From: Macrostomum lignano
Lineage: Eukaryota
Length of the DNA: 64,000 nucleotides
Reading direction: 5' to 3'
Assembly (NCBI GenBank): GCA_002269645.1
Contig: NIVC01000099.1
Span: 682,001 to 746,000, forward strand
Every line of letters starts with the position of its first letter. Position 1 is the stretch's first letter. The translations under genes were made by a program, and so were the position numbers. This document shows positions 23,144 to 55,378 of the stretch, in pieces. The notes beneath the pieces were generated by a model. It ran no database searches. It was not told where the DNA came from and was given only the letters and a program-made list of their open reading frames with translations.

Positions 23144-23391
<248 letters not shown>

Positions 23392-24879
23392 CGTATTCTC
23401 GCTATCTACCATCTATTGCCAGGACCTGCACCGGAGCGGTTACGAAAATTAGATTTCTCGGTAGCTGCTCGCACTCTTTTGCACTACTTGAGTAGTCTGA
23501 TTTTCGTTCGGCATGGCTGGTTCCAGCAGGTAGTTCCTCTGGATAAAAGCGCTTACCGCGCCCATTTGCTTTCCAGCTGCCTTAATCGTTTCCGGTGATC
23601 TTGTGTGCGTGCATTCAGCTTGATTGGCTGCGGCAAGCAAGCTCGAAAGAGCTCGCTTCGCTCGCACTTTCTCGCTATCTATCTATCTATCTATCTATCT
23701 ATTTAACTGATCTGGCAAAACTCTCAATGATGCTGCCTAAAGTAGGATGATATGCGCATTTAACTGGTTTATCTAAAACTCACTTATACAATATACAAAG
23801 GATAAATAATAGAATAGATGACGTGCTGGATTTTGCAAACTGGGTAAAGAACAGACCTATATAATCAAACAACAATACTATAGTCTTCTGTCTGTCATCT
23901 GTTGTGGGCATCCAGACCCCTCTGCCCTACCACAGGTAGCAGATCCTTGTTCCCATGACTGACTTTTACTTTAAAAGTATTTGCCCAGCAAATACGGGTA
24001 GGTTTAGCCAGCTTACCTTTCATAAATTTGAGATCGACTCATTGCTCACGATGTTAAAATACTCGTAGTTAATACCAGCGTAAATACCAGATGCAGCGCG
24101 ACTTTCTGAAGGAAAAGGGCGTCAAAAGTGCGCGTGCACTCCTAATATCCGATCGACAGGCAAAGATCTGCAGTGCTTGCAGTTGGCCCTGCTGGATTTA
24201 AGAAATTGAAAGCAAATTCGAACAGTAGATTGAAACCCCACTAAAGTGCCGCGCAACTTTATACCGACGGACGGCCTGCGCGTTTTCCATGTAAGTTGTT
24301 TTTCCCCTGTGTACAGGCTGGACCAGCCACCGCCGGCACTTCACATGTTCAAGTCCGGACAGGCAGGCGCTACTGCGGGACCAACAGGATGGGGAGAAGA
24401 GACTGCATGGGCGGCGGCCTCTCCTTGCCCGCGAAATGCGAAATGAAAAATGAAGCGGGCCGTGGACTGCAAAGGTAAAGTTTCTCCATCCGGACCAGAA
24501 TAAACTGTAAATGCCACGCCATTCCAGTGGTAGATCCGGTCTTGAGCTAAACATGCGTAAAAAGTACTCGTTGACAGTTGGTGTACCAAAAGTTACCACG
24601 AGAGGCAACCAAGATCCACAAATGGCAGCTGTTTGCTTAACTCTTTGTCACTTCCTGGACGCGGGGTCACAAAATATTGACACCCCTTACTTAGCATATT
24701 GTTGTGGCCCCTTCAACTTTAAATTCCTGTGTACATGTACGCCACTGCTTGTAGTACAATAACTAAATCAACTACATTGAGCATTTTCGCTGCTTTGCGC
24801 CAACAATAATAATAACTAATTACACCTGCCCCAATAGAGCCAGATGTGAAACCGACAGCTCAGCCGCAGCTATTGCGTG

Positions 24880-25104
24880 GCGCATCTGAAGGCTGCGTAC
24901 GGCTTTTCAGTCCAAGGACTGGGGGGTCGCCACACCCAGCCCCAATTACCCCAGCTAATGCTGGCATCCATTTTACAGCTGGGTGAACTGAAGCAATGCA
25001 GAGTTGAGTGTCTTGCTCAAGGACACAAATAGTACCGAGTGAGTCGAGAATCGAACCCCGACGTTTTAGTAGTGATTCCGACGCTCTGACCACTGGGCTG
25101 CAAG
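24880..25104 (-). mobile_element. tRNA-derived SINE, copy 1
   Basis: Minus strand: A-box-like GCCCAGTGGTCAGAGCG, B-box GGTTCGATTC, then TGTGTCCTTGAGCAAGACACT..CCCAGCTGTAAAATGG body. Alignable with the copy at 29925-30150. Confidence 0.75.
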
Positions 25105-26983: not shown

Positions 26984-29900
26984 CTAGCTGTTGGACCCGC
27001 AGTCCCCTTCTTCGGCATTCGCCGATTCTCCCTCCGTGTCGTCGCCAGCTACGAGCCGACGATCAAGCGGCCTTCGCAGCTGAAGTCGGGCGGCCGCATC
27101 GCCGAGCCTGTCGAGATGGACATCGTCGCCGGCGCCATCGGCCTCGACGTCGTTGTCGCACAGGTGCACCTCCTCGTCGATGTCCTTCTCCAGCTCGTCG
27201 GTGGTCGGCGCCGCTGCGCCGTCGACGTCTTCACTGTCGTCGCCGTCTTCGTCGTCGGCTTCGTCATTGTTGCAGTCGGCGCCACCTGAGGCGGCAGCAA
27301 CTGCCGGCTCGAAGGACCCGGCGGTGCTCGCCGCAGTGGCCCCGTCCAGCAGCAGCGGCGAGTCCGCGCCGGGGCCTCCACCGCCGCTGCCAGCGTCCTC
27401 CGCGTCGATATCAACGTCGATGTCGCCGGAGGTCGGCGCCGGCGCCGCCGATGTCAGCTGGAGGCGGTCGCGCAGCTCGCAGACGAGTCGACGCTGAACA
27501 GCGGCTTCGGCCTCCAGGTGCGCGGCGTGCCACGCCAGGTCCCGGCACTTCTGGTAGAAATTCGGGGCGCGCACCTGCGGGTGGGGAAGGAGAGCTGACT
27601 GACTGACTGACTGACTGACTGGCTGACTGACTGACTGACTGGCTGACTGACTGACTGACTGACTGACTGACTGACTGACTGACTGACTGACTGACTGACT
27701 GGCTGACTGACTGACTGACTGGCTGACTGACTGACTGACTGACTGGCTGACTGGCTGACTGACTGACTGACTGACTGACTGGCTGACTGACTGACTGACT
27801 GACTGACTGACTGACTGGCTGGCTGTCTGCCGCACAAGAACCCAGCCGCACCTGGAACCGCAGCAGCAGGCAGTCGGAGTCCAGGTATCCCTCGCTGCTG
27901 AGCAGGTCCAGCCGGAAGAAGCGGTTGTAGCCCCAGCACTCGCCAATGTCAAAGTCGGAGGCGAACTCGCGCACAATATTCCTGGAGGAGTCCCTGGCTG
28001 ACTGGTGCACCATCTCCACCCGGTACTCGTACTTGCTGGTCTCCGGCAGGCCGGCGGTGAGCTCCAGGAACACTGACAGGTAGTTGCCGCGCACGACTCC
28101 GTTGCCATCCGGATAGACTTTGAGCCGCCAGCTGAGGCCGTGGACTCGAAGAGGCTCGCTGTAGACCGGGTCCGCCCGCTGCTGCAGCTGGCTGAACTGC
28201 TCCAGCCGGAACTCGCTGCCGTCATACGGGGGCACGATCTCGGACTGGAACTCGGCGGGCACCGGGGCCGTCACCAGGCTGCTGGTGGGCTGCCTGCGGG
28301 GCGAGTGCGAATAGGCGATGGGAGGCTGCCCTGCGCTGCTACTGGTCAGTAGGCTGAGAGGGACATGCTTCGTGGCGTAAAAGCTGGGAACCGCCAACCG
28401 CACAGCCAGACACAAGCCAACCAGACAGCCAGACACAAGCCAACCACAGCCAGACACAAGTCACCCACAGCCAGACACAAGCCAACCACAGCCAGACACA
28501 AGCCACCCACAGCCAGACACAAGCCACCCACAGCCAGACACAAGCCACCCACAGCCAGACACAAGCCAACCAGACAGCCAGACACAAGCCAACCACAGCC
28601 AGACACAAGCCAACCACAGCCAGACACAAGCCACCCACAACCAGACACAAGCCACCCACAGCCAGACACAAGCCAATCACAGCCAGACACAAGTCACCCA
28701 CAGCCAGACACAAGCCAACCACAGCCAGACACAAGCCAACCACAGCCAGACACAAGCCACCCACAGCCAGACACAAGTCACCCACAGCCAGACACAAGCC
28801 AACCACAGCCAGACACAAGCCACCCACAACCAGACACAAGCCACCCACAGCCAGACACAAGCCTCCCACAGCCAGACACAAGCCAACTGCACAGCCAGAC
28901 ACAAGTCTACAGAACCCACCGCCTAAAGTCGTTGAACATGGCCAGAATGTTAGCGGAACGGTCGATCAGCTGACTCCGCGACAGCACCCGGACCTCGTAT
29001 TCCACGCTGTTGAGAAGCGATTCGAGCACCTCGGCCTCGTGAGCCAGGTGGCCGCGCTGAGTCATGAGGGTGACCAGCTTGGACTTGAGCTGGCTCTCCA
29101 GCCGCGTCACGATCAGCTCAACTGCGTTGCGAATCTCGCGAACTCGCTCGTCTTTGGCCTGCCGGACAGACTCCATGTTCTTCTCCTGGGATGGCGGTTT
29201 TGTGACTGACAAATTGACTGACTGATTGGTAAGTTAGGCGATTGACTGATTCTGTAGCTGACTGATTGGTGAACTGAGTTATTGATTGGTTAACTGGGTT
29301 ATTGATTGGTGAACTGGGTTATTGGTTGGTTAACTGAGTTATTGATTGGTTAACTGGGTTATTGGTTGGTTAACTGAGTTATTGATTGGTTAACTGGGTT
29401 ATTGATTGGTTAACTGGGTTATTGATTGGTTAACTGAGTTATTGATTGGTTAACTGGGTTATTGGTTGGTTAACTGAGTTATTGATTGGTTAACTGGGTT
29501 ATTGGTTGGTTAACTGAGTTATTGGTTGGTTAACTGAGTTATTGATTGGTTGCTTGCTTGCTTGAGCGACTGGTGGATGCGAATAGCCGATGCAAACGAT
29601 ACCGAAGCCAAGAAGCATCCCAGAATCGTTGCAGGCAACACAGGTAGAATAGGGAAAAAGTGACTCCAGACTAATTTAAAACGACGAGAAGTCACCAAAA
29701 AGTCGTCAAAGAGTTTCCTAAAGAGTCAATTTGAGTCTTTTTATTGCCTGCGACTCTGAAACGACTCTGGAGCAATGCAAGTGAGGCCGTAGAGTCCTAT
29801 CTGAGGCGTGCTGGAGTCGCTGTAGAATCACTGAGTTGCGTCTAAAGCGCATCTGCGTCAATTTATGAATCAGAACCGCATTTTGTATTTATAACAGCTC

Positions 29901-32900: not shown

Positions 32901-35900
32901 CTACTTTACTGACATTATTTATATGCATATTTCCAAAATACAAAAAATTAACAAACTAAATAGCTAAAGTAGGGTGCCCAGTAAGCCTATTTTTAGCATG
33001 TGCAAGAACGAAAAAGGTGAAAAGTGATCTTCTTTAAATGGCTGTAACTTTTAAAATATTTAAGATATGGCAACGCTCTTACATTCATTAAAAAGTAGAC
33101 AAATAGATCTTTCAAACAACATAGTTTACATGGTTAGTACATACAACTACAAAGATACAGATTGTCAAACATCATGTACATTTTCGTAAATTTTCAAAAC
33201 TGTGCTGAATTTGCTTGAAAATATGGGGTCGGGAGAGCATATTTTAGTAAATGAGTGCATAACTGCTAAGAATGCTTGAACATTGGGTGTAGGTGACTTC
33301 CTGCAGGTCATTTTAAGTGAATTTTTTTGTTCAGAAATATGTACATATAACATTTAAATGGCCATAACTTTTGAATGGAAAGAGTGGCCACCCTAATTCT
33401 TTTTGCTACTTACTTCTAGTGACACAATGAAACTTTTAGGCAAGACAGGATGAGTGTAACTCTTGACGCAGCATGCTTAACAGAAATCGTCGAAATGCAT
33501 GCAAATCCCCAAAAGGGACATAAAAATCGGGAAATTTTTGAAGCTCGAAAAAAGAGCCAGTTAGTTTCGTTGATAAAATGATAGCAAAACAGGCCAAGCT
33601 CTTTGTCCTAAAGGCACATCCTGATAACTTTTGCCGCACCAAAGTTATTAAGCGTATTTGGCACAGCTGTACATGCAAATACACTATGGAGATAGAAAAT
33701 GTACATTGAGGGGCTATATGCTCCACAAATGTCACGCATGCAATTTTTTTCAGATGTGGATAGCAGGACTTACGATATACTTTATCTTTTATGCATTTCT
33801 CACTAATCCATCTTTTACTTGCAGATGCCAGACATGCTGCACCTGTACAGTATCTGCTATGAGTGCGTGACAAGCTCATTGTGTAGCTTTCTACAGTCGC
33901 CTCTCCCGTCCGAAGATCGCGCACAGCTTCTTGAAGGCCTACATCGGCGCCCCTCTCCTCTTATGGGGACAAGGCAGCAGCAGTAGCAGCAAAGGTTGGC
34001 AAACTGGCATGCTGCAAGTCGACTCTGGCACAGTTGCAGCTGGGACCACTGCAGGAAAGACAAATGCATTGTCCATGTAGATGGCCCAGACACTCTGCTT
34101 GCCAGCAGCTTCCTCGCATATCTTCAACCTCTACAGGTCCCGCACCTTCTTCACTTTCGTTACTGCCTCCCACAGGTTACAAAGTACGTCTAGTTCAGTG
34201 TCTGCAGGCAGACTAGGACATTCTGCCAAGCTAATTAAAAATATTAAAGCACTAAAATGGAGCAGCTGAGTAAAGGCTGAGCTCAGTGTTAGTGTGTGTT
34301 CAAGCCCAAGCGTTCTATGCATTCTATTGCAGCTCGTATTCTATGTCCTAAATCCCGCGTTGCCGAAGTCCACTTGCTGTAATACCAGCCTCCCTCGTTT
34401 CCAAATAAAAAACCCTTTGCCCGGCTATGATGATTAGCCACCTGGGAATAACATACATGAATTGACTTTCCTGCACAACTAGTGCATCCTATGGTCACAA
34501 CACTGAGCAAAAGGGTTCTCAGCCAATTCGGCTGCTGGCAGACAAACTGACTAGGGATGAAAACGGGAGCAGACGAATTGACTGTCATACTCTCATACAT
34601 GTACATGTACATACACAATGTAATCATGCTGTACACTGCCCTCAAGATTGTTAGATTGGCTACGAGCGAGTCACCAATTCAACACTCTATCGCCGAACTG
34701 GTATCCCATCCCAACAAACTGTTGCACAGTTGGCGACTCAAGTCTCGAGCTGCCAGGCCATGTCATCCAAGCCGATTCGTACCGCCCGCAGCTGGTGCAG
34801 ATGCTGCTGACGCTGCAGGCACCGTAATACTGGAGACGAAAGGCACGCACTCGCATTTTGTTGACTGCCTGCTGGCTGATGCAGCCGACACCCTTGACAC
34901 TGCCGATGGTGCGACCTACATTCGTGTCAAGGTCCTGAAACCCACCCTGTAACATTGTCTCGATCATGCCTGACTGGCTTGACTGTTAGTAGCTACAGTT
35001 GTAGTACTGTAGTAGACTCATAGTACAATGAGAAAGCCAGCATAGCAGACGAAATGTTCATTCAGATATTTGCTGACAAACGAACTACAGATGAATTGGT
35101 AGCAGACATTTTGACTGGATTACCACAAAAAGCTTTGTGCTGAAAAGTGGACACAGTGAACAAGTAAATGAATCAAATGATGCAAGTAAACTGTAAGGGT
35201 AAAGTCAATTGCTGAATTCGGGCATGGCCTTTTCAAACATAAAAGTACATGATTCAGTAACATACTACTTAGTAAAGCATCAATTCATTACAGTTGTCAA
35301 ATGGACTAAAAAAAAGCTTTTGAATGAATCTAACATGAAGATAGTATATTAAGATTGACAGGAGCTACATTGACTTTTAGACACCATAGACATCCAGAGT
35401 GGTACTTTGGAAGACCCATTTTCATGGAAATAATGGTCAACCATTTGCATACTACTTACAGGAGAAAGTCAAAAATCTTAATAATTATAGTATACACATA
35501 TTACTTTAATATGAAAGCAATAAAAAAATAAGGTGAATAGAAACTATACCATGAAAAAGCCAAAGAATGGCGCTCTTACAATTTTTTCTATCTATTTTGT
35601 CCTAATCCCCAGATATCTGGAGATATAGAATAATATACTATGTACAAAAATATATAAAATATTGCAGTAACAAAAATTAATTTCCAAAAGTTTGGTATGA
35701 TTTCACTCATAATATCTAGGGCTACAATATGGCATGGTTAAAAATTAGGATTGTAATTTTTTTTTGCACTGGACACCCTACCCTAACTCCATAGTCAGGA
35801 AGGTGGCAGAGTGTGCGCCGGAACAAATTTTGGCCTCTCCCAAAATTGTGCGCCGTGCGCCGACACAAAAACCCTCGTGTGCGCCGTTGTGCGCCCGCCA

Positions 35901-38900
35901 CTACCTGCCTTGCGACAATAAAAGACCTTTTTTTACAACATAGTCGAGTCACGAGACAAGAGAATATAATGGTTAATACGGGACGGTTACGGGCTATCTA
36001 TATTATATTATGAGAAATTGAGATCGTTAAACCGAAAATAGAAAAAAAAAAATTTTTTAATTTAATTTCTTATTTTTAAAACAAAACAAACCTAAAAAGT
36101 AAGCAAATGGCAAAAACAAAGATAAAAAGGAAAAGGAAAGTATTTTATTTTATTTTTTATGTTTTAGTAGAATGCAGTGTTACATTAGATAGAACAGTAA
36201 ATAGTGTACTGTAACAAGTAACGACTTACATTGTTACATGGGATCGCCACAAGGGTAACGCTGCATGTGGCGCGGCGCCTGCCGCGCCGCGCCGCCATGC
36301 GCCGGTGTCCTCTGGTGTGCGCCGTTGTGCGCTGCTGTGCGCTGTTGTGGCGCGCCGCTCCTTGAGAGTGCCATCCTTAGCAAACAACTCGCTTGCGGGT
36401 TGTTCGTTGACTTCGAAGGAGCATTTGACAATGTCCTCTTCCGCTCCTTCAGAAATTCTCTTTCCCGCAGGAATGTAAGACACAGCATTGTTCGCTGGAT
36501 TTATTTTATGATCCGCAAAAGGTTTGTGACATCCACACTTATGGGCGTTACCCTCACCCGGGCGGTGATGAAAGGCGGCCCGCAAGGTGGCGTGCTAACT
36601 CCACTTCTCTGGAATCTCGTCATGGACGAACTTCTAACCGCTGACATTCCCAGCAGTATCACCAGGGCGGGCTACGCCGATGACGTTGCCGCGGTCGTCA
36701 GCGGACCCGACCCCGCCACTCTGCGCAACCTGATGCAGCAATTCGCCGACAAGGCGGCCGACTGGGCTACACAGCATGGCCTAAAAATCAGCGTCACTAA
36801 GACTGTCGCTGTCGTTTTCACCAAGCGCCGTAAGTGGGAGATGAAAAACCTCACTGTCTATGGCAGAAACATCCCCTTCAAGAAGGAGGTCAAATACCTC
36901 GGTGTGACGCTAACGCATGACCTGCGCTGGACGAAGCACCTTGATAACGTCATCGGTCGGGCAAAACGCTGCTTTGCCCAGCTGCGCAGAGCCATCGGGC
37001 CGACTTGGGGCCTCTCGCCTAGAACGGTCCGTTGGATTTATACCGGCATCATCCGGCCCAGTATCACATACGCGAGTCTCATCTGGACTAGCGTGCTGGA
37101 GCAGAAGGCCGCCCGTCAGCGGCTGTACCAGCTTCAGGGCAGCATTTGCCGTGCCATCACAGGTGCGTACCCGTCCACCCCTTACGAGGGGCTGAACACT
37201 ATCCTTAACCTACCTCCGCGTCACCTATTTATTAGGGCGGAGGCTATGAAGTCTGCCTCCCGGCTTATCAGAGATAAAACGTTAAATAACGCGCCCTCTG
37301 GCTTTATGCCAATGAAAACATTAATCCCGCATATGGACTTTGTCCGCCGCGACCTTAACAACATCCACATGGACCTGGGCAATGTGGATAGTCGACCTCC
37401 CGCCCTCAACATCAGGAGGGGCTTCAAGACCGCCATCCCTGGCCGAGACAACATTCCGCTGGATGTCGGTGTGAACCGGCGCAGCCAGGGCATTCACTGC
37501 TTCACCGACGGCTCGCTGTTCAACGGCCGCGCTGGAGCGGGTATTGCCATTTTCCACGAGGGTAAGATGCTTCTCCAGGAAAGTCTGCACCTCGGTGAGA
37601 ACACCTCAGTTTTCCAAGCTGAAATTTGCGCCATTGAGCAGTGTGCCCAGCAACTGTTTCAGGCGAACATTAATAATTTTGACATTAATTTCTACACTGA
37701 TAGCCAAGCTGCTATTAAGGCCTTAACCACTGAGAATATCTCCGCTGCTACAGTATCTCAATGCCACCGCAGTGTGCAATCTCTCTCAGTCCTTAACAGG
37801 ATTAGAATTATCTGGACACCTGGTCACAGCAACATCCTGGGCAACGAGCTCGCGGACTCTCTCGCCAAGGAGGGCAGCAACCCAGACGGCAACCACCGTC
37901 TGATGAGGCTACCCACCCCCAGGTCGCAAGTCACCCGCCATATCAACAGGTGGCTCCATCAGCAGCACCAGCTCCACTGGAACAGCTGCACCGAGTACAG
38001 GCAGAGCCGCTCTGCCATGCCTAACCTGAACAGGAAAGTCTCTGATTATCTGATTTCGCTTAACAGAACCGACCTCAGGGAGATGTGCATGGTCCTAACC
38101 GGCCACGGATTCTTCCAGAGACATATATCGTTGCAAACCGGTTGCCCTCCCACCTGTCCCTTCTGTGGCATAGGAGAGGAGACCGCGGAGCATCACGTCA
38201 CCTTCTGCCCTTACTTCAACAAGGCGCGGCACAAATACCTCGGCCACCCCCAGCGGATGGACGAGCTGACCACCGCGGACAATATCCGAGACCTCCGCGC
38301 CTTCGTCCGGGACTCCGGCCGGATGAGGGTCGCCGATGCCTCCACTGCGGACCTGCCGACTACTGGCGGGGACTGGGCGCACCCCCAAGGCTAATCCTTG
38401 TGCTCTTTTACCTTGGGGTTGCGATAGGGGCCTCGCGGCCTATTCGCGGCGCCTGCGCCCCCCGTCAGTAGTAAGTAAGTAAGTAAGGTGGCAGAGTGTG
38501 CGCCGGAACAAATTTTGGCCTCTCCCAAAATTGTGCGCCGTGCGCCGACACAAAAACCCTCGTGTGCGCCGTTGTGCGCCCGCCACTACCTGCCTTGCGA
38601 CAATAAAAGACCTTTTTTTACAACATAGTCGAGTCACGAGACAAGAGAATATAATGGTTAATACGGGACGGTTACGGGCTATCTATATTATATTATGAGA
38701 AATTGAGATCGTTAAACCGAAAATAGAAATTTAAAAATTTTTTAATTTAATTTCTTATTTTTAAAACAAAACAAACCTAAAAAGTAAGCAAATGGCAAAA
38801 ACAAAGATAAAAAGGAAAAGGAAAGTATTTTATTTTATTTTTTATGTTTTAGTAGAATGCAGTGTTACATTAGATAGAACAGTAAATAGTGTACTGTAAC

Positions 38901-39669
38901 AAGTAACGACTTACATTGTTACATGGGATCGCCACAAGGGTAACGCTGCATGTGGCGCGGCGCCTGCCGCGCCGCGCCGCCATGCGCCGGTGTCCTCTGG
39001 TGTGCGCCGTTGTGCGCTGCTGTGCGCTGTTGTGGCGCGCCGCTGTGCGTCGCTGTGCGCCGTTGTGCGCCGTTGTGTGCCCAAAAAGGGCTTGTGTGCG
39101 CCGGAATTTTCTGACCAAACTGCCACCTTCCTGACTATGGCCCTAACTAAAGTCAAAGTTAGGTTTTGAATAGGAAAAAAAAATATATATATATATTTGT
39201 AAAACAGCAAAAACAACTAGTTGGCTAGGCCTATTAGTATAGCAAAAATATTATCAATATAAAGTTAATTATTACTTTAATTCTTAGTCAATCAAAAAGT
39301 TATAGGCCTATTCATATGTGCACTTATTTATTAAGCAACATAAAATTTGTATCTTATTCATTTTTAAATGACCTTTAGGCTTTAATGATAGAAACAATTT
39401 TACCTTAAAACATACCAAACTTATAAACTATAATACAAGCTGTTATACTATACTATTATTTAAGTATTTTATAAGAATTCTGAAAGATGTAGGTAATTTG
39501 CTAGATTCAATCAAATATAAGTTAAACTAAAGTTATATTTCATTGGTAAAAACCAAGTAGAAATTTTATAATTAATAGCACTTCACTGAAACCAACTCTA
39601 AAAGTGACAGAAACAAAAATGTACTTGATTCTTTAAGTACAAACTTACCTCAAGACCATCTTCAGCCAT
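26984..39669 (-). CDS. TRIM37: TRIM37 E3 ubiquitin ligase (RING, B-box, coiled coil, MATH/TRAF, acidic tail), ~610 aa; exons 39649-39669, 32397-32498, 32262-32299, 31093-31465, 28920-29185, 27852-28293, 26984-27574
   Basis: [128 protein letters not shown]. Several exons are absent from the ORF track and were found by reading the minus strand. The 7-codon first exon is the least certain. Confidence 0.92.
27596..27826. repeat. (GACT)n microsatellite filling TRIM37 intron 6
   Basis: Direct inspection; occasional GGCT units. Confidence 0.97.
28400..28905. repeat. 21-bp minisatellite CAGCCAGACACAAGCCA(A/C)CCA, TRIM37 intron 5
   Basis: 7-aa period (QPDTSHP) in the ORF track. Confidence 0.93.
29205..29550. 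repeat. 20-bp minisatellite ATTG(A/G)TTGGTTAACTG(A/G)GTT, TRIM37 intron 4
   Basis: Three units per 60-base line. Confidence 0.92.
29925..30150 (+). mobile_element. tRNA-derived SINE, copy 2 (TRIM37 intron 4)
   Basis: GTAGCCGAGTGGTCAGAGCG (A box), GGTTCGATTC (B box), TGTGTCCTTGAGCGAGACACTTAACTCTGCATTGCTTCAGTTCACCCAGCTGTAAAATGGGTGCCAGC shared with copy 1. Confidence 0.75.
31518..32218. repeat. 30-bp minisatellite CTGGGGAGGGTGGCAGTAAAGCCTGGTGGA, TRIM37 intron 3
   Basis: Two units per line, in register. Confidence 0.95.
35800..36359 (+). repeat. 560-bp direct repeat, copy 1 (left flank of the retrotransposon)
   Basis: Matches 38485-39044 at a constant offset of 2685; the only differences I saw are AAA (36045-36047) vs TTT (38730-38732). 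Confidence 0.93.
36360..38484 (+). mobile_element. 5'-truncated non-LTR retrotransposon (I/R1/LOA-like group) with partial RT, RNase H, CCHC zinc knuckle, short 3' UTR and (AGTA)n tail
   Basis: Uninterrupted frame to stop at 38394: [39 protein letters not shown] (RT); [30 protein letters not shown] (RNase H); [20 protein letters not shown]. Ends in AGTAGTAAGTAAGTAAGTAA. No endonuclease or RT motifs 0-2 present. Confidence 0.93.
38485..39044 (+). repeat. 560-bp direct repeat, copy 2 (right flank, abutting the AGTA tail)
   Basis: See copy 1. The ORF track shows identical 66-aa translations at 35813-36013 and 38498-38698. Confidence 0.93.
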
Positions 39670-41512: not shown

Positions 41513-42061
41513 CCATAGTCAGGATCAAGGCATCAAGCTATGTGTGCGCCAGAAGCCACCCCAAAAATTTCTTGGTGTGTGCCAGGTACGCCAGGCAAAA
41601 TTCACAAGTGTACCAAGTGGGCCAGTCCTAAATCCTAATCCTTATATATAAAAATGTGTAATTGCAAATAAGTAAAGATTATAAATTGAAGATTTGAAGA
41701 TTTATGTTTTTAATTTCAAAACTAATGAATAAAAAAGAGAAAAAAAACACAATTTAAAGAATATTTTAAATGAAGCAATGGTTGTCAATTGTCATTATAA
41801 TATATTTGCGAAATCATTATTAAACTTTGTGCAAAATTTCATGCTTGATTTTGTCTTTTGCCGTAGCCGTGGTGCAGCCTCCTTCAGTGTGCGCCATGCA
41901 GTGTGCGCCATGTGTGTGCGCCATTTAGAGTGCGCCAATTATATATATACCAAAGTGTACGCCAGAAGACCCTTTCAAAAATTTTGTGCACTAAGTGTGC
42001 ACCAGCTGTCCCAAATGTGCGCTAGAAATTTCCGGCATATATGACATGATCCTAAGTGTGG
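41513..42061. mobile_element. Degenerate relative of the hAT-like MITE
   Basis: Starts CCATAGTCAGGATCA; ends TGATCCTAAGTGTGG (12/15 inverted match). Flanks GATTAAGG/AATTGAGG (6/8). Same GTGCGCC subterminal motifs. Confidence 0.55.
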
Positions 42062-42372
42062 AATTGAGGCCATTGAGGCCATCTCTATTTGATGAAAAGT
42101 AAAAGCTAATTACTGGCACACTGCAATTAGCAACATGCATTTATTTGGAAGTTAGACCATCCTATTATTAAATATTATATCATAGCAAAATCTTATATAT
42201 TTATTTGTTTTTTTCCAAAAAATTTATAGAATTTCCTGGCATCCTGGATATAGACTAGAGAATGATTTTTCTAGGCAATGAGTCTGACTATGTTTATAAA
42301 TTTAAATTATTTTTTATCTTGGCAATTTAAGTATAAAAAATTTAATCTTGACTATTTTAAAACTCATTGCAG

Positions 42373-45300
42373 ATGTTGGAATTATTACTTGTATTGGTAT
42401 CATTCTTGTGTCAGCCACTTAGTATTAGTGGACAGAATGATTACTATTGTGGGCCACCTATGGTCAACAAGACATTGGGTGGTAAGTTACTTTTATTTTA
42501 TTGTACAGTTTGTATTTTTTATTTCAAATGCATTTGATATTGTATTTATTTTTTATAAGAAATAATCTAATATTTCTTTCTAGTTTGTTGTTTCTAATTA
42601 GTCTTTTACTATTGGTAGAACCAACTATTTTTAGGCAAATCTGATGTACACAATGGTGTTGTTACTATCTCTAAGCCCTTTTTTACTTGAGCCAATCTTA
42701 CAAGGGTCTATCCATATTTTCAAACCATTTGATATAGTTTAGTAACAAAAAGAACTTGAATAATTACTGTTTTATTTTCTGTAACTAAAAAGCCAAGAAC
42801 TTTCTCAACCCTATCTGAGTTTTCAAAAAAAATTCTGCTTGTGAAGGTTTGAGCTTGTGAATTTTTGAAGTTGTCAAAGATTCTGCATATCAATGATGCT
42901 TAGATAATAGCCCCCACACATGTCCTTCAATGTTACTTATAAAGTGCTTCTCCCTCGCCAGGCTGCCCATCTGGCTGGGTGAAGCTGGAGTCCACCTGCT
43001 ACTTCGTGAACATGTACCCCTACAAGACTTATGCCGATGCTGACAACGACTGCCGCGACCGCTTTGGTCTTTTGATGCGCATCGACTCCAAGGTGGAGTT
43101 CAACGCCTTCAGCAAGCTGCTGGATGAACAGAGCTACGACAAGACGGAGCCGTTCTACACTTCCGGCCAGTTGGACCCGGCCGTCCGGTTCAAATTCGTC
43201 TGGGGCGGCCACTCGCCCGACGTTGCCGCCTGGCGCACAGAGATTTACGACTTCTGGATCGACGAAATCCCCAGAGAGGGCGACGGCAAGCCGCCGGAAT
43301 CCTGGGGCGACCGAACCTTCGCCCTGCTTGGCAACAACGGCGCCACGTGAGTGACTTAAATTTTTTAGCCGTGAACGAGATACCCGAGGGGGGCGGCTTG
43401 TCGTACGATTTACACTCGAGAGGGCCAAACCCCAAAGGCACAGAAAATGGGTACGAGCTCTGAGGTAACTGCTTGATAATAGAAACAACTAGCGATCTGG
43501 TGCCCCCCTTCAGGGCGCCCAATAGGCTAAGAGCAAGAGTTATTCATGCAGAAAAGCCCATTTTCTTAAGAACCAATGCCTTCTTAGCTTTGTCTTAAAA
43601 TTGTCGTGGACAAAGATGCTTGCTATGGATATTTTGCTTCTAAAAGTAACAAAAGGACACAACAAAATAAAGCCTTCACAAAGATAACAGGCATTCCCCC
43701 TAAATCGGAAGCATCCCCCCAGACCGCAGGCATCCCCAAAAAGAAAGCTACTCCAGACAGCAAGAATCCCCCAGACAGCAAGCATCCGCCCAGACAGCAA
43801 GCATCCGCCCAGACAGCAAGCATCCGCCCAGACAGCAAGCATCCCCCAGACAGCAAGCATCCCCCAGACAGCAAGCATCCCCCAGACAGCAAGCATCCGC
43901 CCAGACAGCAAGCATCCCCCAGACAGCAAGCATCCGCCCAGACAGCAAGCATCCGCCCAGACAGCAAGCATCCGCCCAGACAGCAAGCATCCGCCCAGAC
44001 AGCAAGCATCCGCCCAGACAGCAAGCATCCGCCCAGACAGCAAGCATCCCCCAGACAGCAAGCATCCCCCAGACAGCAAGCATCCCCCAGACAGCAAGCA
44101 TCCGCCCAGACAGCAAGCATCCCCCAGATAGCAAGCATCCCCCAGATAGCAAGCCTATTGTAATGCCTATTGACGCCTTGTGGTGAGTAGAGAGAAGTCC
44201 AGACTTGTATTGGTAGAAAACTTATCAAGCAATAAGCCGCTCCTGTACACTTGTGTTTCTAGTTTTTATGCTAGGCCGCTCCCAAATACAGGTACTGAAA
44301 AAACTGCCTAAAATTAACGAATACAATAAATACACTTATCACTTTCATAATACTTTACCTACAGTAGTATTAAAGAATATTGCATTTAAGAAATTAAATA
44401 ATAAATAATTTTTCTATTAAATCCTATATACTAAAATACTCTACTAATAGTAGAAAAATCGGGAAAATACGTTTAATAGCACCAATAATAGCACCATCGA
44501 TACTCTACTTGTAGTAATAATATTCTTTTTCAAATAGTTATTAGTTCACAAGACGCAGCACCCACACTTCAATCCATGCACTCCGACCATCCGCAGCTGG
44601 GGCTTCTTCCTTCGCAACGGCACGATTCCGCGGCCCTTCATCTGCCAGGCCGACGCGACCGCCCTCTCGGCCGCCATTGGCAGCCAGCGCGGCTTCGACT
44701 ACGGCGTGGTCGGCATCAACAATGTCCGGCGCAGCCCTTGCATCCAGTCCGAGCCAGCCAACGAAGTTTACTTTGAGAACACCCGGGCCGGCAGCTTGGC
44801 CACGCCGCCTACGGCCGTGTTCCAGTGCCTGGCCTACGGCAACCCGCAGCCCACCTACACCTGGTATCGGTTCGGCACCAACATGCAGAAGACTAAGATT
44901 GACCCGCTGACCCAGACCCAGTACAGCGTCACCAACGGCAAGCTCACCATCAATCAGGTCGAGTCGTCTAGGGATTCCGGTACGGATCCTGCTGCTGCGT
45001 TCCTCTTGGTTCCATTTTCTGGGATGTCTGTCATAGTAGGCTGGGGACTCGTGACGTCATAGTAGGCTGTGGAATCGTGACGTCATAGTAGTGCCATGCC
45101 TTGGCCCTTAATGTCCTAACAGGCTTGCAATTTACGATGCTTTAACAGTATGACATCATTAGTCAAAGTCTTTTTATGCTAGATTTAGTCGCGTAGGGTG
45201 ACGTCATTAGTTGAAAAGCCTGTTTTAGCAAAGCAACAGCTGCAGAGTTACTGAGCCAGCTTCGATCACTCCACCCTTTCCAGGAAACTACGCCTGCGAA

Positions 45301-48300
45301 GCCGTGAACGACCTGGGCGCCGTGATGAGCCGGCACGCCGCTCTGAAATTTGGCATCTTGCCAACATTCCCGAAATCGTCGCAGGAGACAATCGAGAGGA
45401 ACGCCTTCCAGTTCGCCAACATCGAGTGCAAACTGTCCGACAACAGCAACCCCAGGGACTTGTTCAACTTTCAGTTCTTCTACAGCAACATTGCGCCGGA
45501 GACTTCCTCGGATATCCGGGAGGTCCGGCCGGATTTCCGGTCCAACCTGTTCGTGTCGCAGTCCACGGGCCGGTTGTACTTTAGTGAGGTCACCTCCACG
45601 GACATGGGGTTCTACTACTGCCAGGTGGGCGTCACCGTTGGCGTGTCCACCCAGGAGAAGGGGCCGAACATCTACCTGAAGGTCAACAACGGTGGCGGCG
45701 ACGAGATCAGCGTCATGGTGGCGGACGGCTTCCCGTCCAATGTGCCGAAGAGTCCCCTGCGCGGCGAGGACGTGCAGCTGGAGTGCATCGGCTACGGGCC
45801 CATCACCCGCTACAACCAGCCTCTCATCTACAGGTGAGACTCGCTTTCGCTTGCCTAAATGTGGTGAGATTTAGGGACAGCTCCATCACAGGTAAGATTT
45901 AGGGACAGCTCCATCACAGGTGAGATTTAGGGACAGCTCCATCACAGGTGAGATTTAGGGACAGCTCCATCACAGGTGAGATTTAGGGACAGCTCCATCA
46001 CAGGTGAGATTTAGGGACAGCTCCATCACAGGTGAGATTTAGGGACAGCTCCATCACAGGTGAGATTTAGGGACAGCTCCATCACAGGTGAGATTTAGGG
46101 ACAGCTCCATCATAGGTGAGAATTAGGGACAGCTCCATCACGGGTGAGATTTAGGGACATCTCCATCACAGGTGAGATTTAGGGACAGCTCCATCACAGG
46201 TGAGATTTAGGGACAGCTCCATCACAGGTGAGATTTAGGGACAGCTCCATCACAGGTGAGATTTAGGGACAGCTCCATCACAGGTGAGATTTAGGGACAG
46301 CTCCATCACAGGTGAGATTTAGGGACAGCTCCATCATAGGTGAGAATTAGGGACAGCTCCATCACAGGTGAGATTTAGGGACATCTCCATCATAGGTGAG
46401 AATTAGGGACAGCTTCATCACAGGTGAGATTTAGGGACAGCTTCATAACAGGTGAGATTTAGGGACAGCTTCATCACAGGTGAGATTTAGGGACAGCTCA
46501 ATCACAGGTGAGATTTAGGGACAGCTTCATCAAAGGTGAGATTTAGGGACAGCTTCATCACAGGTGAGATTTAGGGACAGCTTCATAACAGGTGAGATTT
46601 AGGGACAGCTTCATCACAGGTGAGATTTAGGGACAGCTCAATCACAGGTGAGATTTAGGGACAGCTCCATCACAGGTGAGATTTAGGGACAGCTCAATCA
46701 CAGGTGAGATTTAGGGACAGCTCCATCACAGGTGAGATTTAGGGACAGCTCCATCATAGGTGAGAATTAGGGACAGCTTTATCAAAGGTGAGATTTAGGG
46801 ACAGCTCCATCACAGGTAAGATTTAGGGACAGCTTCATCACAAGGTGAGATTTGGGGACAGCTTCATCAAAGGTGAGCTTTAGGGACAGATTCATCACAG
46901 GTGTTTTTTATGGACAGCTTCATCACAGGTGTTTTTTATGGACAGCTCCATCACAGGGGAGATTTAGGGACAGATCTATCATAGGTGAGATTTAGGGACC
47001 TCCAGCGAAGCTGAGACGCAGGACAAACGATTCCAGAGTATCAAAACTCCCAAATCCCAGGTGGCGCCGAGTGGGCCTCGAGATCCCCAGCAAGAGCCGA
47101 TGGGGCGACATCTTCAAGCGAGTGCTGGTGATCCCGAATGCCCAGATGGAGGACAGCGGCGCCTACGAATGCGAGATCGAGGACGGCAACAGGCGGACCA
47201 GCGGCTACCGGAGGCTTCAGCTCACCATCAACTCCGGCCCGTACTTCGTCCGCCGGCCCTACGACCTCATAGTTGACGAGGGCACCACGCAGCGATTCGA
47301 CTGCAAGGCCAGCGGCACCCCGCCGCTCACGTACGCCTGGTTCCGCGGCAACAACATCAAGACTGAGCTGCTGGACAACATCACAGATCTAGACAGGGCC
47401 CGGTTTACCTGGGACGTGTCCGGTTCCCAGCCCTACTTGGAGATTAAAAATGTGAAGCCGTCCGACTCCGCCGCCTACGGCTGCCGGGTCACCAACAGCT
47501 ACGAGACCATCTACGGCTTCGCTGAGCTGCGTGTGCTCAACTTCGCCCCGTCATTTTACAAGAATCCCACCAGCCAGGAGTCCGGGCTGGTGGGAAAGTC
47601 CGTCTACCTGCCCTGCGATGTCGAAGGCGCCCCCGAGCCCACCCGGACTTGGCGGTTCAAGGGCTCCGATCTTGCCGTCATCAAAGTTATGGATCAGGTG
47701 AGACTTATGCTGCTGCGTAAGTTCTCTGAACTGGAGTCCGAAATGTACCACCTGAGACACCTGGAATCCCAAATGTACTAGCTGGGACACCTGGAATCCC
47801 AAATGTACTAGCTGGGACACATGGAATCCCAAATGTACTAACTGAGACACCTGGAATCCCAAATGTACTAACTGAGACACCTGGAATCCCAAATGTACTA
47901 ACTGAGACACCTGGAATCCCAAATGTACTAACTGAGACACCTGGAATCCCTAATGTACTAACTGAGACACCTGGAATCCCAAATTTACTAACTGAGACAC
48001 CTGGAATCCCAAATTTACTAACTGAGACACCTGGAATCCCAAATGTACTAGCTGGGACACCTGGAATCCCAAATGTACTAGCTGGGACACATGGAATCCC
48101 AAATGTACTAACTGAGACACCTGGAATCCCAAATGTACTAGCTGGGACACCTGGAATCCCAAATGTACTAGCTGGGACACATGGAATCCCAAATGTACTA
48201 ACTGAGACACCTGGAATCCCAAATGTACTAACTGAGACACCTGGAATCCCAAATGTACTAACTGAGACACCTGGAATCCCAAATTTACTAACTGAGACAC

Positions 48301-51300
48301 CTGGAATCCCAAATTTACTAACTGAGACACATGGAATCCCAAATGTACTAACTGAGACACCTGGAATCCCTAATGTACTAACTGAGACACCTGGAATCCC
48401 AAATTTACTAACTGAGACACCTGGAATCCCAAATGTACTAACTGAGACACCTGGAATCCCAAATGTACTAACTGAGACACATGGAATCCCAAATGTACTA
48501 ACTGAGACACATGGAATCCCAAATGTACTAACTGAGACACCTGGAATCCCAAATGTACTTACTGAGACACCTTGAATCCCAAGTTTACTCATCCCACTCA
48601 CACCGAAATCCCCAGCCCGACCGGAAGTGCCCGCCAACGGCCAAGTACTGCCTGCTGCCCAGCGGCAAGCTGCAGATCCAGCAGCTGGTGGCGGCGGACA
48701 GTGGCCTATACTCCTGCGTGGCCACCAACCCGAGCGGGTCAGCCAACAATTCGGTCAGTCTGGCGGTTGCCGAGCAGCTCACATTCGATTTTGCGCCAGA
48801 GAATCGCCTGGTTCTGGTTGGCAGCACCGTTGACCTGCCCTGCCAGCTGAAGGCCACGGCCGCCAATCTGGACGTGAACTACATGTGGAAGTTCGAAAAC
48901 ATGGAGATCCTGTTTGGCCGCTACGATTTCGATGCCAGACGCTACGAGCTGACCCAGTTCTACAGGCCCTACAAGAAAGACTTCGGCACCCTGCGTATCT
49001 CCAACATACAATACGATTATGAGGGTGAGCTATGAGTATGAGGGATAGGACCTAATAACAGTTCAGGATGGGACCTGCTAAAAGTTCAGGATGGGACCTA
49101 CTAACAGTTCAGGATGGGACCTACTAACAGTTCAGGATGGGACCTGCTAAAAGTTCAGGATGGGACCTACTAACAGTTCAGGATGGGACCTACTAAAAGT
49201 TCAGGATGGGACCTACTAACAGTTCAGGATGGGACCTGCTGAAGGTTCAGGATGGGACCTGCTAAAAGTTCAGGATGAGACCTGCTAAAAGTTCAGGATG
49301 AGATCTACTGAAGGATCAGCATGAGACCAGCTGAAGGTTCAGTTTGAGACCAGCTGAAGGTTCAGTATGAGACCAGCTGAAGGATCAGCATGAGACCAGC
49401 TGAAGGTTCAGTATGAGACCAGCTGAAGGTTCAGCATGAGACCAGCTGAAGGTTCAGTTTGAGACCAGCTGAAGGTTCAGTTTGAGACCAGCTGAAGGTT
49501 CAGTTTGAGACCAGCTGAAGGTTCAGTGTGAGACCAGCTGAAGGTTCAGCATGAGACCAGCTGAAGGTTCAGTATGAGACCAGCTGAAGGTTCAGTATGA
49601 GACCAGCTGAAGGTTCAGTATGAGACCAGCTGAAGGTTCAGTATGAGACCAGCTGAAGGTTCAGTATGAGACCAGCTGAAGGTTCAGTATGAGACCAGCT
49701 GAAGGTTCAGTGTGAGACCAGCTGAAGTCGCACCCACCCGCAGGCAACTACACCTGCCAGGCCCAGACGCCGCTGGGCTACGAGGAGAGGTCCGCCTACC
49801 TCCGCGTGGCCGGTCCGCCCGGACCCTGCGCTGGCGTGGAAGTGCCGTCCATCAACAGCACGGTGTTCAACATCCGCTGGCGGTCGGGCACCAGCCACCA
49901 GAGCCCCATCACCGCCTACCAGCTGGAGCTGGAGCTGGCAGTCAACCCGGGCCAGTGGACAGTCCACAGCACTGTGCCAATGTCAGAGGACATCATAGTC
50001 CGTGAGAGGTCAAACGAGGACACGGGCCTGCGGCAGGCCCAGGTGAAGGGGCTGCCGTTCTACCAGCAGTACCGCATCCGGGTCAGCGCCATCAATGTGT
50101 ACGGCGTCGGGCTGGCCAGCCCGCCCAGCCAGGTGTTCGTCACCGTGTCCGGGCCGCCGTCCCGGGCGCCGCAGAATATCACTGGCGGCGGCGGCAAGGT
50201 GCGAATCCTTTTAATTAAGATTCTGTTGCCATGCGAGGCCTGGTGATCAGTTTCAAATTGTAGTGCTCACGAAATCTAAAGCGAAGAACTCCCTGAATTC
50301 CCCAGAATCGCTCTGAATTCCCCAGAATCGCCCTGAATTCCCCAGAATCGCTCTAAATTCCTAGGATCGCCCTGAATTCCCCAGAATCGCTCTAAATTCC
50401 TAGGATCGCCCTAAATTCCCCAGAATCGCTCTGAATTCCTAGGATCGCCCTGAATTCCCCAGAATCGCTCTGAATTCCTAGGATCGCTCTGAATTCCCCA
50501 GAATCGCTTTGAATTCCCCAGAATTGCTTTGATTTTCCAAGAATCGCTCTGAATTCCCCAGAATCGCTTTGAATTCCCCAGAATTGCTTTGATTTTCCAA
50601 GAATCGCTCTGAATTCCCAAGAATCGCTCTGAATTCCCCAGAATCGCTTTGAATTCCCCAGAATCGCTTTGAATTCCCCAGAATTGCTTTGATTTTCCAA
50701 GAATCGCTCTGAATTCCTCAGAATCGCTCTGAATTCCCCAGAATCGCTTTGAATTCCCCAGAATCGCTCTGAATTCCCAAGAATCGCTCTGAATTCCCCA
50801 GAATCGCTCTGAATTCCTCAGAATCGCTCTGAATTCCCCAGAATCGCTCTGAATTCCCAAGAATCGCTCTGAATTCCCCAGAATCGCTCTGAATTCCTCA
50901 GAATCGCTCTGAATTCCCCGCTGTAATATCAGCATAATCGACAACCTCCCCGCAATCGCCGCTCGCAGGTCAAGACGCTGGTGGTTCGCTGGAAGAAGAT
51001 TCCTTTAGCCTACCAGGGCGGCTCCAATTTCACCTACGATGTCCAGTACAGACGGGTCGGCGACGCTGACTGGCTGGAGGCCAGCCGGATCGTCGGCAAG
51101 CCGATGCACATCCCGCCGGATCACGTGGAGACCGCCATTGTGCTGTCCGGTGCCACCAACGAAATCAGCTTCAAGATGTTCGAAGCCAGGGTTCGCGGAG
51201 CCAGCGTCAAGATTGAAACAATTAACAACGTTGAGACAAAGACTCGCCTGACCGGGCCCTGGTCTGACATTATAAGGTCAGCCGCGCCCTCCTGTTTGTA

Positions 51301-54300: not shown

Positions 54301-54334
54301 TGGCCTGGCGCGCCTGCTTGCTCTGCATTATTGA
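42373..54334 (+). CDS. Cont: Contactin, invertebrate type (signal peptide, C-type lectin domain, 6 Ig, 4 FN3, GPI signal), ~1344 aa; exons 42373-42481, 42962-43346, 44597-44979, 45284-45833, 47061-47697, 48616-49024, 49744-50198, 50969-51276, 51850-52324, 54011-54334
   Basis: Signal peptide MLELLLVLVSFLCQPLSISG; lectin start GCPSGWVKLESTCYF..RPFICQ; Ig motifs DSGNYACEAVN, DSGAYECE, DSAAYGCRVTN, DSGLYSCVATN, YEGNYTCQA; FN3 motifs YRIRVSAINVYGVG, NITGGGGKVKTLVVRW, YCFSVQLFNSAGDSP; hydrophobic C-terminus LWALALAGLARLLALHY. All nine junctions are in phase. Confidence 0.92.
43750..44155. repeat. 19-bp minisatellite CAGACAGCAAGCATCC(G/C)CC, contactin intron 2
   Basis: Period 19 (43801, 43820, ...). 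Confidence 0.93.
45862..46995. repeat. 28-bp minisatellite CAGGTGAGATTTAGGGACAGCTCCATCA, ~40 copies, contactin intron 4
   Basis: Direct inspection. Confidence 0.95.
47740..48585. repeat. 30-bp minisatellite CTGGAATCCCAAATGTACTAACTGAGACAC, contactin intron 5
   Basis: Two units per line, in register. Confidence 0.95.
49045..49726. repeat. 23-bp minisatellite grading from AGTTCAGGATGGGACCTACTAAC to AGGTTCAGTATGAGACCAGCTGA, contactin intron 6
   Basis: Direct inspection. Confidence 0.92.
50290..50918. repeat. 20-bp minisatellite GAATTCCCCAGAATCGCTCT, contactin intron 7
   Basis: Three units per line, in register. Confidence 0.95.
51305..51765. repeat. Pyrimidine-rich ~19-bp minisatellite CTACTCTCTCCCTCACTAC, contactin intron 8
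   Basis: Direct inspection; G almost absent on the + strand. Confidence 0.9.
52365..53960. repeat. 32-33-bp minisatellite GGGATTAGCAGCTACCTGAAGGATCAGAAGG(G)A, contactin intron 9
   Basis: Direct inspection. Confidence 0.95.
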
Positions 54335-54467
54335 TTGTTTTGGAAATGTTTCTGTAACTGACTTGCTCTGCGTATTAACATTATTCATAATTTTCCTTGT
54401 GAAAATTCCCTCCTAATAGCTTAATTATGCTTTTGTATCGACTCCTAGGGTTCGATAAGGATCGATC

Positions 54468-55378
54468 CTAAAGAATCGCCCACAAGCCGCTCCTAAAGAA
54501 TCGCCCACAAGCCGCTCCTAAAGAATCGCCCACAAGCCGCTCCTTCCTAAAGAATCGCCCACAAGGAATAATCACCGCTCCTAAAGAATCGCCCACAAGC
54601 CGCTTCACTCCTAAAGAATCGCCCACAAGCCGCTCCTAAAGAATCGCCCACAAGCCGCTCCTAAAGAAACGCCCACAAGGAAGAATCACCCACAAACCGC
54701 TCCTGAAGAATCGCCCACAAGCCACTCCTAAAGAATCGCCCAGAAGCCACTCCTAAAGAATCGCCCACAAACCGCTCCTGAAGAATCGCCCACAAACCGC
54801 TCCTGAAGAATCGCCCACAAGCCACTCCTAAAGAATCGCCCACAAACCGCTCCTGAAGAATCGCCCACAAGCCGCTCCTAAAGAATCACCCACAAGCCAC
54901 TCCTAAAGAATCGCCCACAAGCCGCTCCTGAAGAATCGCCCACAAACCGCTCCTGAAGAATCGCCCACAAACCGCTCCTGAAGAATCGCCCACAAGCCGC
55001 TCCTGAAGAATCGCCCACAAACCGCTCCTGAAGAATCGCCCACAAACCGCTCCTAAAGAATCGCCCAGAAGCCACTCCTAAAGAATCGCCCACAAGCCGC
55101 TCCTAAAGAATCGCCCACAAGCCGCTCCTAAAGAATCGCCCAGAGGCCACTCCTAAAGAATCGCCCACAAACCGCTCCTGAAGAATCGCCCACAAACCGC
55201 TCCTGAAGAATCGCCCACAAGCCGCTCCTAAAGAATCGCCCACAAGCCGCTCCTAAAGAATCGCCCACAAACCGCTCCTGAAGAATCACCCACAAGCCAC
55301 TTCTAAAGAATCGCCCACAAGCCGCTTCACTCCTAAAGAATCGCCCACAAGCCGCTCAGAAGGAATCGCTCACAAACC
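54468..55378. repeat. 25-bp minisatellite CCTAAAGAATCGCCCACAAGCCGCT downstream of contactin
   Basis: Period 25 (54481, 54506, ...). Confidence 0.95.

Follow-up and report, generated by a model that had tools for sequence, protein, structure and literature searches.

In a 64,000-nt stretch of the genome of the flatworm Macrostomum lignano (GenBank assembly GCA_002269645.1, contig NIVC01000099.1, positions 682,001 to 746,000 of the forward strand; this whole stretch is called here the window, and coordinates refer to it), a 5'-truncated non-LTR (long terminal repeat) retrotransposon, or long interspersed nuclear element (LINE), interrupts a 667-bp miniature inverted-repeat transposable element (MITE) and is bracketed by two direct copies of 560 nt of MITE sequence. 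The duplicated DNA belongs to the target of the insertion, and the locus carries a target-site duplication (TSD) about 30 times the usual length. A long TSD that target-primed reverse transcription (TPRT) produced is the most economical explanation, and this supports a preliminary description of the same DNA, which had proposed second-strand nicking some 560 nt from the first nick. We consider it probable that both the insert and the duplication were made by a TPRT event in which the second strand of the same duplex broke some 560 nt away from the initial nick, and we are fairly confident that one TPRT event made the duplication when resolution on the same duplex and resolution between chromatids are taken together. 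Large TSDs are on record for the human LINE L1, and we regard the window locus as a real, natural flatworm example of a known rare outcome.

The two repeats (Table 1) were compared without gaps at an offset of 2685 nt and agree at 557 of 560 positions, a match far above chance expectation; similarity drops abruptly on either side, and both boundaries are sharp. Their mismatch is a single 3-nt block, AAA in the left copy and TTT in the right one, which sits within an A11T6 run, so that the repeats are, as previously described, identical save for this block. Between them lies an insert of 2,125 nt (36360-38484), and the repeat copies stop exactly at its two ends, the left copy meeting the 5' end of the element at 36359/36360 and the 3' tail meeting the right copy at 38484/38485 with AAG microhomology. 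That the repeats exactly bracket a 5'-truncated reverse transcriptase (RT)-RNase H element was borne out by Pfam, which finds RNase_H and, of RVT_1, profile positions 65-205 only.

The junctions could be defined to within a few nucleotides. The insert ends in the tail GTAG(TAAG)4, which overlaps the target by up to 3 nt (AAG), and because these nucleotides are shared by tail and target the length of the TSD is 557-560 nt. The preliminary description had correctly placed the start of the right copy at the tail, but its reading of the tail as (AGTA)n with a 2-nt AA microhomology has to be replaced. It also had the left copy ending where the truncated RT starts, which stands with the small correction that two nucleotides, CC (possibly up to 4 nt), intervene and come from neither target nor element. 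We take them as filler because a comparison with the full-length protein P0001 and with the right copy matches neither: at the position of CC the right copy continues with GT, and P0001 reads K-I-E-S-A where the window reads L-L-E-S-A. The junction sequences are GCCGCT-CC-TTGAGAGT on the 5' side and TAAGTAAG-GTGGCAGAG on the 3' side. The 560-nt repeats begin with AAGG and end with CGCT, and have no TG...CA ends.

The nature of the duplicated DNA follows from the anatomy of the target. Terminal inverted repeats (TIRs), perfect over 21 nt where shuffled sequences give an expectation of 0, enclose the whole arrangement, and an 8-bp TSD, CCCTAACT, stands directly outside them on both sides. Removal of the insert and of one repeat copy leaves 571+96 = 667 bp and restores, as had been claimed, a MITE with intact TIRs and TSD. 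This element has GTGCGCC-type subterminal motifs and no long open reading frame (ORF) of its own, and TSDs of 8 bp are compatible with the hAT, P or Merlin superfamilies. The first 11 nt of the MITE (35789-35799) are not duplicated. Because the duplicated segment, nt 12-571, is interior to the intact TIRs and the 8-bp TSD, it is target DNA and not an LTR, in agreement with the preliminary description; the empty site, as reconstructed within the window alone, would be the 667-bp MITE. At a distance of 2.4 kb downstream stands a diverged MITE relative whose right end and right TIR are degenerate and whose flanks read GATTAAGG and AATTGAGG; apart from it, no further copy of the MITE or of the LINE was found in the window. 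This relative is monomeric, which hints that an internal duplication may not be native to the MITE. A scan of metagenome contigs for the MITE terminus together with GTGCGCC gave 82 matches, all of them due to chance and 0 with an inverted end, and the peptide spanning the MITE/RT junction was not found in any retrieved gene model.

The insert contains a single open frame (36361-38394, stop codon at 38392-38394), followed by a 3' untranslated region (UTR) of 77 nt and the tail. Since the RVT_1 match spans positions 65-205 of the 205-position profile only, the RT is truncated N-terminally. The full RVT_1 domain is present in P0001, and because this protein runs on upstream the window copy is genuinely 5'-truncated inside the RT: it has no ORF1, no endonuclease and no N-terminal RT part, and is a dead-on-arrival copy. 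Its protein is 95-100% identical to dozens of M. lignano UniRef proteins, and at least 74 gene models of this species carry pieces of the element (the near-identical proteins are UniRef or MetaClust entries, which come without contigs). A protein search with a C-terminal query of 114 residues yielded no candidates. With gene-model splice artifacts set aside, a single residue separates the window copy from the majority of its family; the copy is essentially identical to the family consensus, and the insertion is therefore very young. The family 3' end, GTCAGTAG(TAAG)n, was found in several other copies, represented by 'APAPPVSS' read-through gene models. Because these models read through the 3' UTR, ...CCCCCCGTCAGTAG followed by a variable tail is established as the end of the element, and it follows that the right copy of the duplication begins right at the tail, with an AAG overlap of at most 3 nt. 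The element has no terminal repeat of its own, and its 5' truncation is variable, the window copy starting in mid-RT and the copy in a second locus, P0047, starting 717 nt further in.

Metagenomic relatives with 50-56% identity (L001-L003), in units of about 5.2 kb, have an upstream ORF1 and an ORF with Exo_endo_phos_2 (PF14529), RVT_1 and RNase_H; the tails of L001 and L002 are (GATG)/(GAGT) and (ATG)n. A putative endonuclease region (IYLIQEP...) is also present in M. lignano gene models, with a Pfam score short of significance. The family is thus an RNase H-bearing LINE with a simple-repeat tail, whose close relatives encode a predicted apurinic/apyrimidinic endonuclease (APE)-type enzyme; the words 'jockey' and 'R1' in the source names of matched proteins are automatic labels and give no clade assignment. 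A PF03372 (EEP) match in P0018 was considered as the element endonuclease and rejected, as it belongs to a fused downstream neighbor gene. Many M. lignano gene models (P0018, P0047, P0006-P0009 and others) are chimeras of host exons spliced to the LINE, the splice donor being either an internal site after ...RDSGRMR or the GTAAGT of the element tail, and Pfam-based names such as 'RNase H domain-containing protein' and 'Endo/exonuclease/phosphatase' are misleading for such models.

A scan of the M. lignano gene models at hand for repeats on either side of the element turned up a second locus. In P0047 (UniRef A0A1I8GFM3, an Aa_trans protein) a 66-amino-acid host peptide, RSGVRVSEF...HSQL[H/Y]NVTEID, is present twice, spanning residues 226-291 and residues 504-569, the copies differing at one residue (H/Y), and a 5'-truncated copy of the window LINE family sits between the two host segments. 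This element copy starts at the equivalent of window position 37079, a truncation point other than that of the window copy. The left peptide copy passes straight into the element, with at most one codon between the end of the duplicated segment and the 5' end of the element, and since no AG acceptor stands at the required position in the element DNA this junction reflects genomic contiguity and not splicing. The right copy comes after the element end APAPPVSS; its start is probably the acceptor of a host exon to which the tail's GTAAGT is spliced, for which reason the duplication of 198 nt is a lower bound. On the Aa_trans profile of Pfam, the N-terminal part of P0047 covers positions 3-112 and the C-terminal part continues from 132; the reconstructed empty site is colinear with the profile, and consequently the segment is single in the Aa_trans family. 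Judged from its predicted protein, P0047 would represent an independent insertion of the family into a gene, with the same architecture as in the window. The preliminary description had pointed to other family members for deciding between a one-off recombination product and a behavior of the family; as far as this can be tested the outcome favors the family, P0047 being a second insertion with a duplication of at least 198 nt. Of the gene models, 12 have host sequence to either side of the element, and nearly all of them leave the element by an internal splice at ...RDSGRMR, before the true junctions, so that no rate can be estimated (2 positives, 0 informative negatives).

Other copies and relatives showed further arrangements. 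In P0141 (UniRef A0A1I8IT93), a fragmentary gene model, the 17-amino-acid peptide FSRRGAHRQQSLPGWCG occurs at residues 1-17 and 1142-1158, the second time directly 5' of a full-length element copy; this could be another insertion-linked duplication or a tandem (target-LINE) arrangement. Neither L086 nor L088, both distant relatives, has a direct repeat of at least 40 nt in its flanks. In L088 (5897-6300) the relative, which is full-length with endonuclease and RT-RNase H ORFs, directly adjoins on its 5' side a (TC)n tract some 400 nt long, reminiscent of LINEs that target microsatellites. Another distant relative, with 31% amino acid identity (L087 1-10906; ENA ERZ25071824 ctg67416), lies inside a 5.45-kb tandem repeat whose unit consists of a 5'-truncated RT/RNase H copy and about 3 kb of other DNA. 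It could have arisen by amplification through unequal exchange between long TSDs or be an assembler artifact; the contig has 2x coverage and a name ending in '_c', is taken as circular, and is not interpretable.

The topology of the window locus is that of TPRT with a 560-nt stagger, the tail adjoining MITE nt 12 and the truncated 5' end adjoining nt 571. It bears the hallmarks of TPRT at both junctions: a simple-repeat tail and 3-nt microhomology at the 3' side, and RT truncation with 2 filler nt at the 5' side. From this anatomy and from the junction sequences, which are read directly, we infer an order of events and a distant plus-strand end as follows. The element endonuclease would nick the minus strand between MITE nt 11 and 12, at the putative site 5'-CCACCTT^CCTGAC-3', and the resulting ...CCTT-3'OH would pair with the (UAAG)n tail of the RNA over at most 3 nt and prime cDNA synthesis, which would stop after 2.1 kb. 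A plus-strand 3' end about 560 nt downstream, after ...GCGCCGCT, would be used rather than one at the usual 10-20 nt and would be joined to the cDNA via the 2 filler nt, and second-strand synthesis together with fill-in of two 560-nt single-stranded stretches would duplicate the target. The distant break might be a random or pre-existing nick or a nascent-strand end at a replication fork; it might also reflect weakly coupled second-strand cleavage in this family or its host, as in human cells deficient in nucleotide excision repair (NER), or an RT template jump onto a target transcript, followed by homology-guided resolution.

Some observations weigh against this account. The site of the second break carries no structural mark, hairpins and other structures there being no different from those of shuffled sequences (z=-0.94); the AAA/TTT block, an odd 3-nt difference, is not predicted by simple fill-in; and the evidence from P0047 is at the protein level, from one gene model (n=1) of an unverified assembly, with a duplication of at least 198 nt. 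A hairpin-templated switch was considered as the source of the AAA/TTT block and rejected, since it predicts a different sequence.

Several other origins have to be weighed against a distant break on the same duplex. The cDNA end of a single TPRT event might have been joined to the broken end of a sister chromatid, homolog or homeolog, or extended by break-induced replication, so that the LINE bridges the duplication. L1-bridged tandem duplications in tumors have been explained in this way, by sister-chromatid joining or break-induced replication (PMC7058536; bioRxiv 10.1101/2024.12.14.628481), and tandem duplications of 1-10 kb have been 'regarded as large TSDs' (bioRxiv 10.1101/2024.12.14.628481). 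Near-identical partners would exist in M. lignano, which PMC5704211 presents as a recent hidden tetraploid, and the AAA/TTT and P0047 H/Y differences are what one would expect of copies taken from separate chromosomes; however, one mutational event per 560 nt also fits a change after insertion, and the final sequence predicted is the same as with a break on the same duplex, so that the window does not discriminate between the two. We consider resolution between chromatids unlikely. A MITE that was already a complete or partial tandem dimer is harder still to accept as the target. The LINE would have entered where the two units meet, and the inner MITE ends would have been lost with at least about 115 bp of deleted target, and although the window is extraordinarily rich in tandem arrays and target deletions at L1 insertions are well known (PMC7058536), two independent rare events would be required, the array units are of 19-50 nt and not of 0.7 kb, and the sole related MITE in reach is a monomer. 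Nor does a dimer predict the coincidence of boundaries in P0047, where at most one codon separates the end of the segment from the start of the element; we judge it quite improbable.

The high copy number and near-identity of the LINE invite recombination and assembly collapse, and the AAA/TTT block could mark two MITE copies. Both points would suit a two-locus origin, with LINEs inserted into two copies of the MITE (after nt 571 in one and after nt 11 in the other) and joined via the LINE by ectopic recombination or by the assembler, or else a read-through transcript of LINE and MITE entering another MITE copy by homology-primed TPRT. The former needs two independent insertions in the same orientation into one small MITE family, the latter trans-mobilization and nicking of a homologous copy; P0047 would be left unexplained, its target being a gene and not a dispersed repeat, and the window has no second copy of either element, the diverged MITE relative aside. 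Taken jointly, we regard these two variants as very improbable. A false haplotypic or tandem duplication, introduced by the assembly at a heterozygous insertion whose own TSD is short and ordinary, is conceivable in a species whose assemblies, according to PMC10733133, are difficult because of polyploidy and high repeat content, and the 3-nt block in a homopolymer run could come from polishing. Nevertheless, both junctions (tail/MITE nt 12 and MITE nt 571/mid-RT) are novel and could not be created by mis-joining a short-TSD allele and an empty one, and the same architecture is seen at a second locus in gene model P0047; an artifact seems to us highly improbable. There is practically no chance that the 560-nt repeats are the LTRs of an LTR retrotransposon, as direct repeats flanking an RT-RNase H frame might suggest. 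The repeats are interior to a TIR element with its own 8-bp TSD and lack TG...CA; the left one enters the element in mid-RT; primer-binding site, gag, protease and integrase are absent, Pfam giving RVT_1 and RNase_H only; and a (TAAG)n tail closes the element, whose full-length relatives have ORF1 and APE-RT-RNase H.

A long TSD left by one TPRT event is not without precedent. PMC6895275 (citing Gladyshev and Arkhipova 2009) gives 10-20 bp as the normal TSD length of APE LINEs and a fixed 126-bp TSD for the rotifer element R9, and names the latter as the record for a regular, family-wide TSD. For L1 in HeLa cells, TSDs above 100 bp are reported in PMC5223499 for less than 10% of recovered events, and in NER-deficient cells (XPA/XPC/XPD) the median L1 TSD was 1.5 kb and the maximum 5.3 kb, from which the same paper concluded that a remote second nick, not related to the first, had been used. 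According to PMC2912911, 'extremely long TSDs' of L1 are coupled to 5'-truncated copies. In the library of papers that was searched, nothing came up on TSDs of M. lignano retroelements. The preliminary description had called the 126 bp of R9 exceptional, which holds for regular, family-wide TSDs and is incomplete as a benchmark of the extreme, since sporadic L1 TSDs reach 5.3 kb; and because such L1 TSDs and L1-bridged duplications are documented, it had overstated the novelty of the locus.

The human L1 events with large TSDs share with the window an APE-type LINE (in the window by way of its relatives), a duplication that runs from the 3' tail to the 5' junction, a size in the hundreds of base pairs (the L1 range being >100 bp to 5.3 kb) and 5'-truncated copies. 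They come from engineered L1 in cultured or repair-deficient human cells, whereas the window insertion is natural, apparently germline-fixed and from a flatworm; furthermore, the window LINE bears RNase H and a simple-repeat tail, and at least 2 loci of its family show a long duplication. In the L1-bridged duplications of cancers, too, one 5'-truncated LINE marks where the direct copies join, and the 3' breakpoint bears the hallmarks of TPRT, but they are somatic and extend from kilobases to tens of megabases, compared with 0.56 kb in a normal genome. In the I factor and the I/R1/LOA group we find the same combination of an ORF1 and an ORF2 with APE, RT, RNase H and C-terminal CCHC (APE and ORF1 again by way of the relatives), a short tandem repeat instead of poly(A) at the 3' end, and frequent 5' truncation; these families make TSDs of about 10-20 bp, and here the window family differs.

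R9 belongs to the R2 group of LINEs, which are specific for ribosomal DNA (rDNA) and have a restriction-like endonuclease, and every R9 copy has the identical 126-bp TSD at one 28S site. Like the window element, it is a non-LTR retrotransposon with a TSD far beyond the usual 10-20 bp. In contrast to R9, the window LINE has unrelated targets (a MITE, and an amino-acid-transporter exon in P0047) and no single rDNA site, carries RNase H and CCHC after the RT, and has relatives with an APE (Exo_endo_phos_2). Its duplications measure 560 nt in the window and, as a lower bound, at least 198 nt in P0047.

Second-strand cutting or use is the least understood step of TPRT, and long TSDs are the footprint of an altered second-strand step. 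Such TSDs have come so far mainly from engineered L1 in cultured, repair-deficient or tumor cells, plus the 126 bp of R9. M. lignano, whose LINEs are active, serves as a transgenic model, and the finding of a natural young case and of a second case suggests that it could supply many long-TSD events, which could serve to ask where the second break originates. Through long TSDs, pieces of the host are duplicated as well, as with the portion of a transporter exon in P0047, and such TSDs are recombination substrates able to erase or amplify the insertion. Because a second family copy shows it, the outcome is probably recurrent rather than unique, and long duplication is possibly a recurrent feature of this LINE family. 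Whether the family, or the M. lignano germline generally, routinely completes TPRT from an end hundreds of nucleotides away is a further step, and one that we find doubtful. If it does, natural insertions would commonly have TSDs of 0.2-0.6 kb or longer and of variable length, and this would be the first natural LINE lineage with first- and second-strand cleavage uncoupled as a rule; exons or segments would readily be duplicated by it, and unequal exchange between the long TSDs would lead to loss of insertions or to (target-LINE)n arrays. Should both cases turn out to be one-offs, the locus would be neat but ordinary, one more instance of a rare outcome already known.

Table 1. Coordinates in the window of the interrupted MITE, the LINE copy and the duplication
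Feature	Position	Strand	Remarks
Left 8-bp TSD of MITE, CCCTAACT	35781-35788	.	Same octamer at 39141-39148
Left TIR of MITE, CCATAGTCAGGAAGGTGGCAG	35789-35809	+	Perfect 21-nt inverted repeat with 39120-39140
Putative first-strand nick site	between 35799 and 35800		
Copy 1 (left) of 560-nt target duplication, MITE nt 12-571	35800-36359	+	Ends at element 5' junction; 557/560
AAA, sole difference between copies	36045-36047	+	TTT at 38730-38732
Filler CC at 5' junction	36360-36361	+	Templated by neither target nor element
5'-truncated non-LTR retrotransposon body	36362-38471	+	ORF, then 3' UTR ending ...CCCCCCGTCAGTAG
Reverse transcriptase, C-terminal two thirds only	36382-36912	+	Pfam RVT_1, residues 8-184, profile 65-205 of 205, E=8.2e-19
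RNase H	37492-37878	+	PF00075, residues 378-506, E=4.9e-13
C-terminal CCHC motif	38155-38208	+	Read from translation; conserved in relative P0003
(TAAG)4 simple-repeat tail	38472-38487	+	Final AAG = first 3 nt of copy 2 (microhomology)
Copy 2 (right) of 560-nt target duplication, MITE nt 12-571	38485-39044	+	Starts at element tail
Putative second-strand break	between 39044 and 39045		In target terms
Unduplicated MITE 3' end (nt 572-667)	39045-39140	+	Includes right TIR, 39120-39140
Right 8-bp TSD of MITE, CCCTAACT	39141-39148	.	
Diverged MITE relative, monomeric, 549 bp	41513-42061	+	12-nt terminus CCATAGTCAGGA in common; GTGCGCC subterminal motifs

Downstream of the interrupted MITE, a probable first coding exon (42362-42482) has a signal-peptide-like start, MLELLLVLVSFLCQPLSISGQNDYYCGPPMVNKTLGG, and is followed by GTAAGT; the MITE/LINE locus may lie just upstream of a gene. 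Minisatellites at 1-34000 and 43000-56000 form over 30 unrelated arrays of 0.3-2.2 kb each, their units measuring 19-50 nt, among them 12573-14770 (23 nt x93), 52399-53966 (33 nt x48) and 45863-46999 (28 nt x41), and most of the window 'ORFs' of at least 150 amino acids lie inside such arrays. Tetranucleotide arrays are present as (TCTA)62 at 23144-23391 and (CTGA)59 at 27595-27829. Finally, 24843-24917 is 92% identical to residues 83-107 in the N-terminal flank of P0032, a dispersed repeat at another M. lignano locus.

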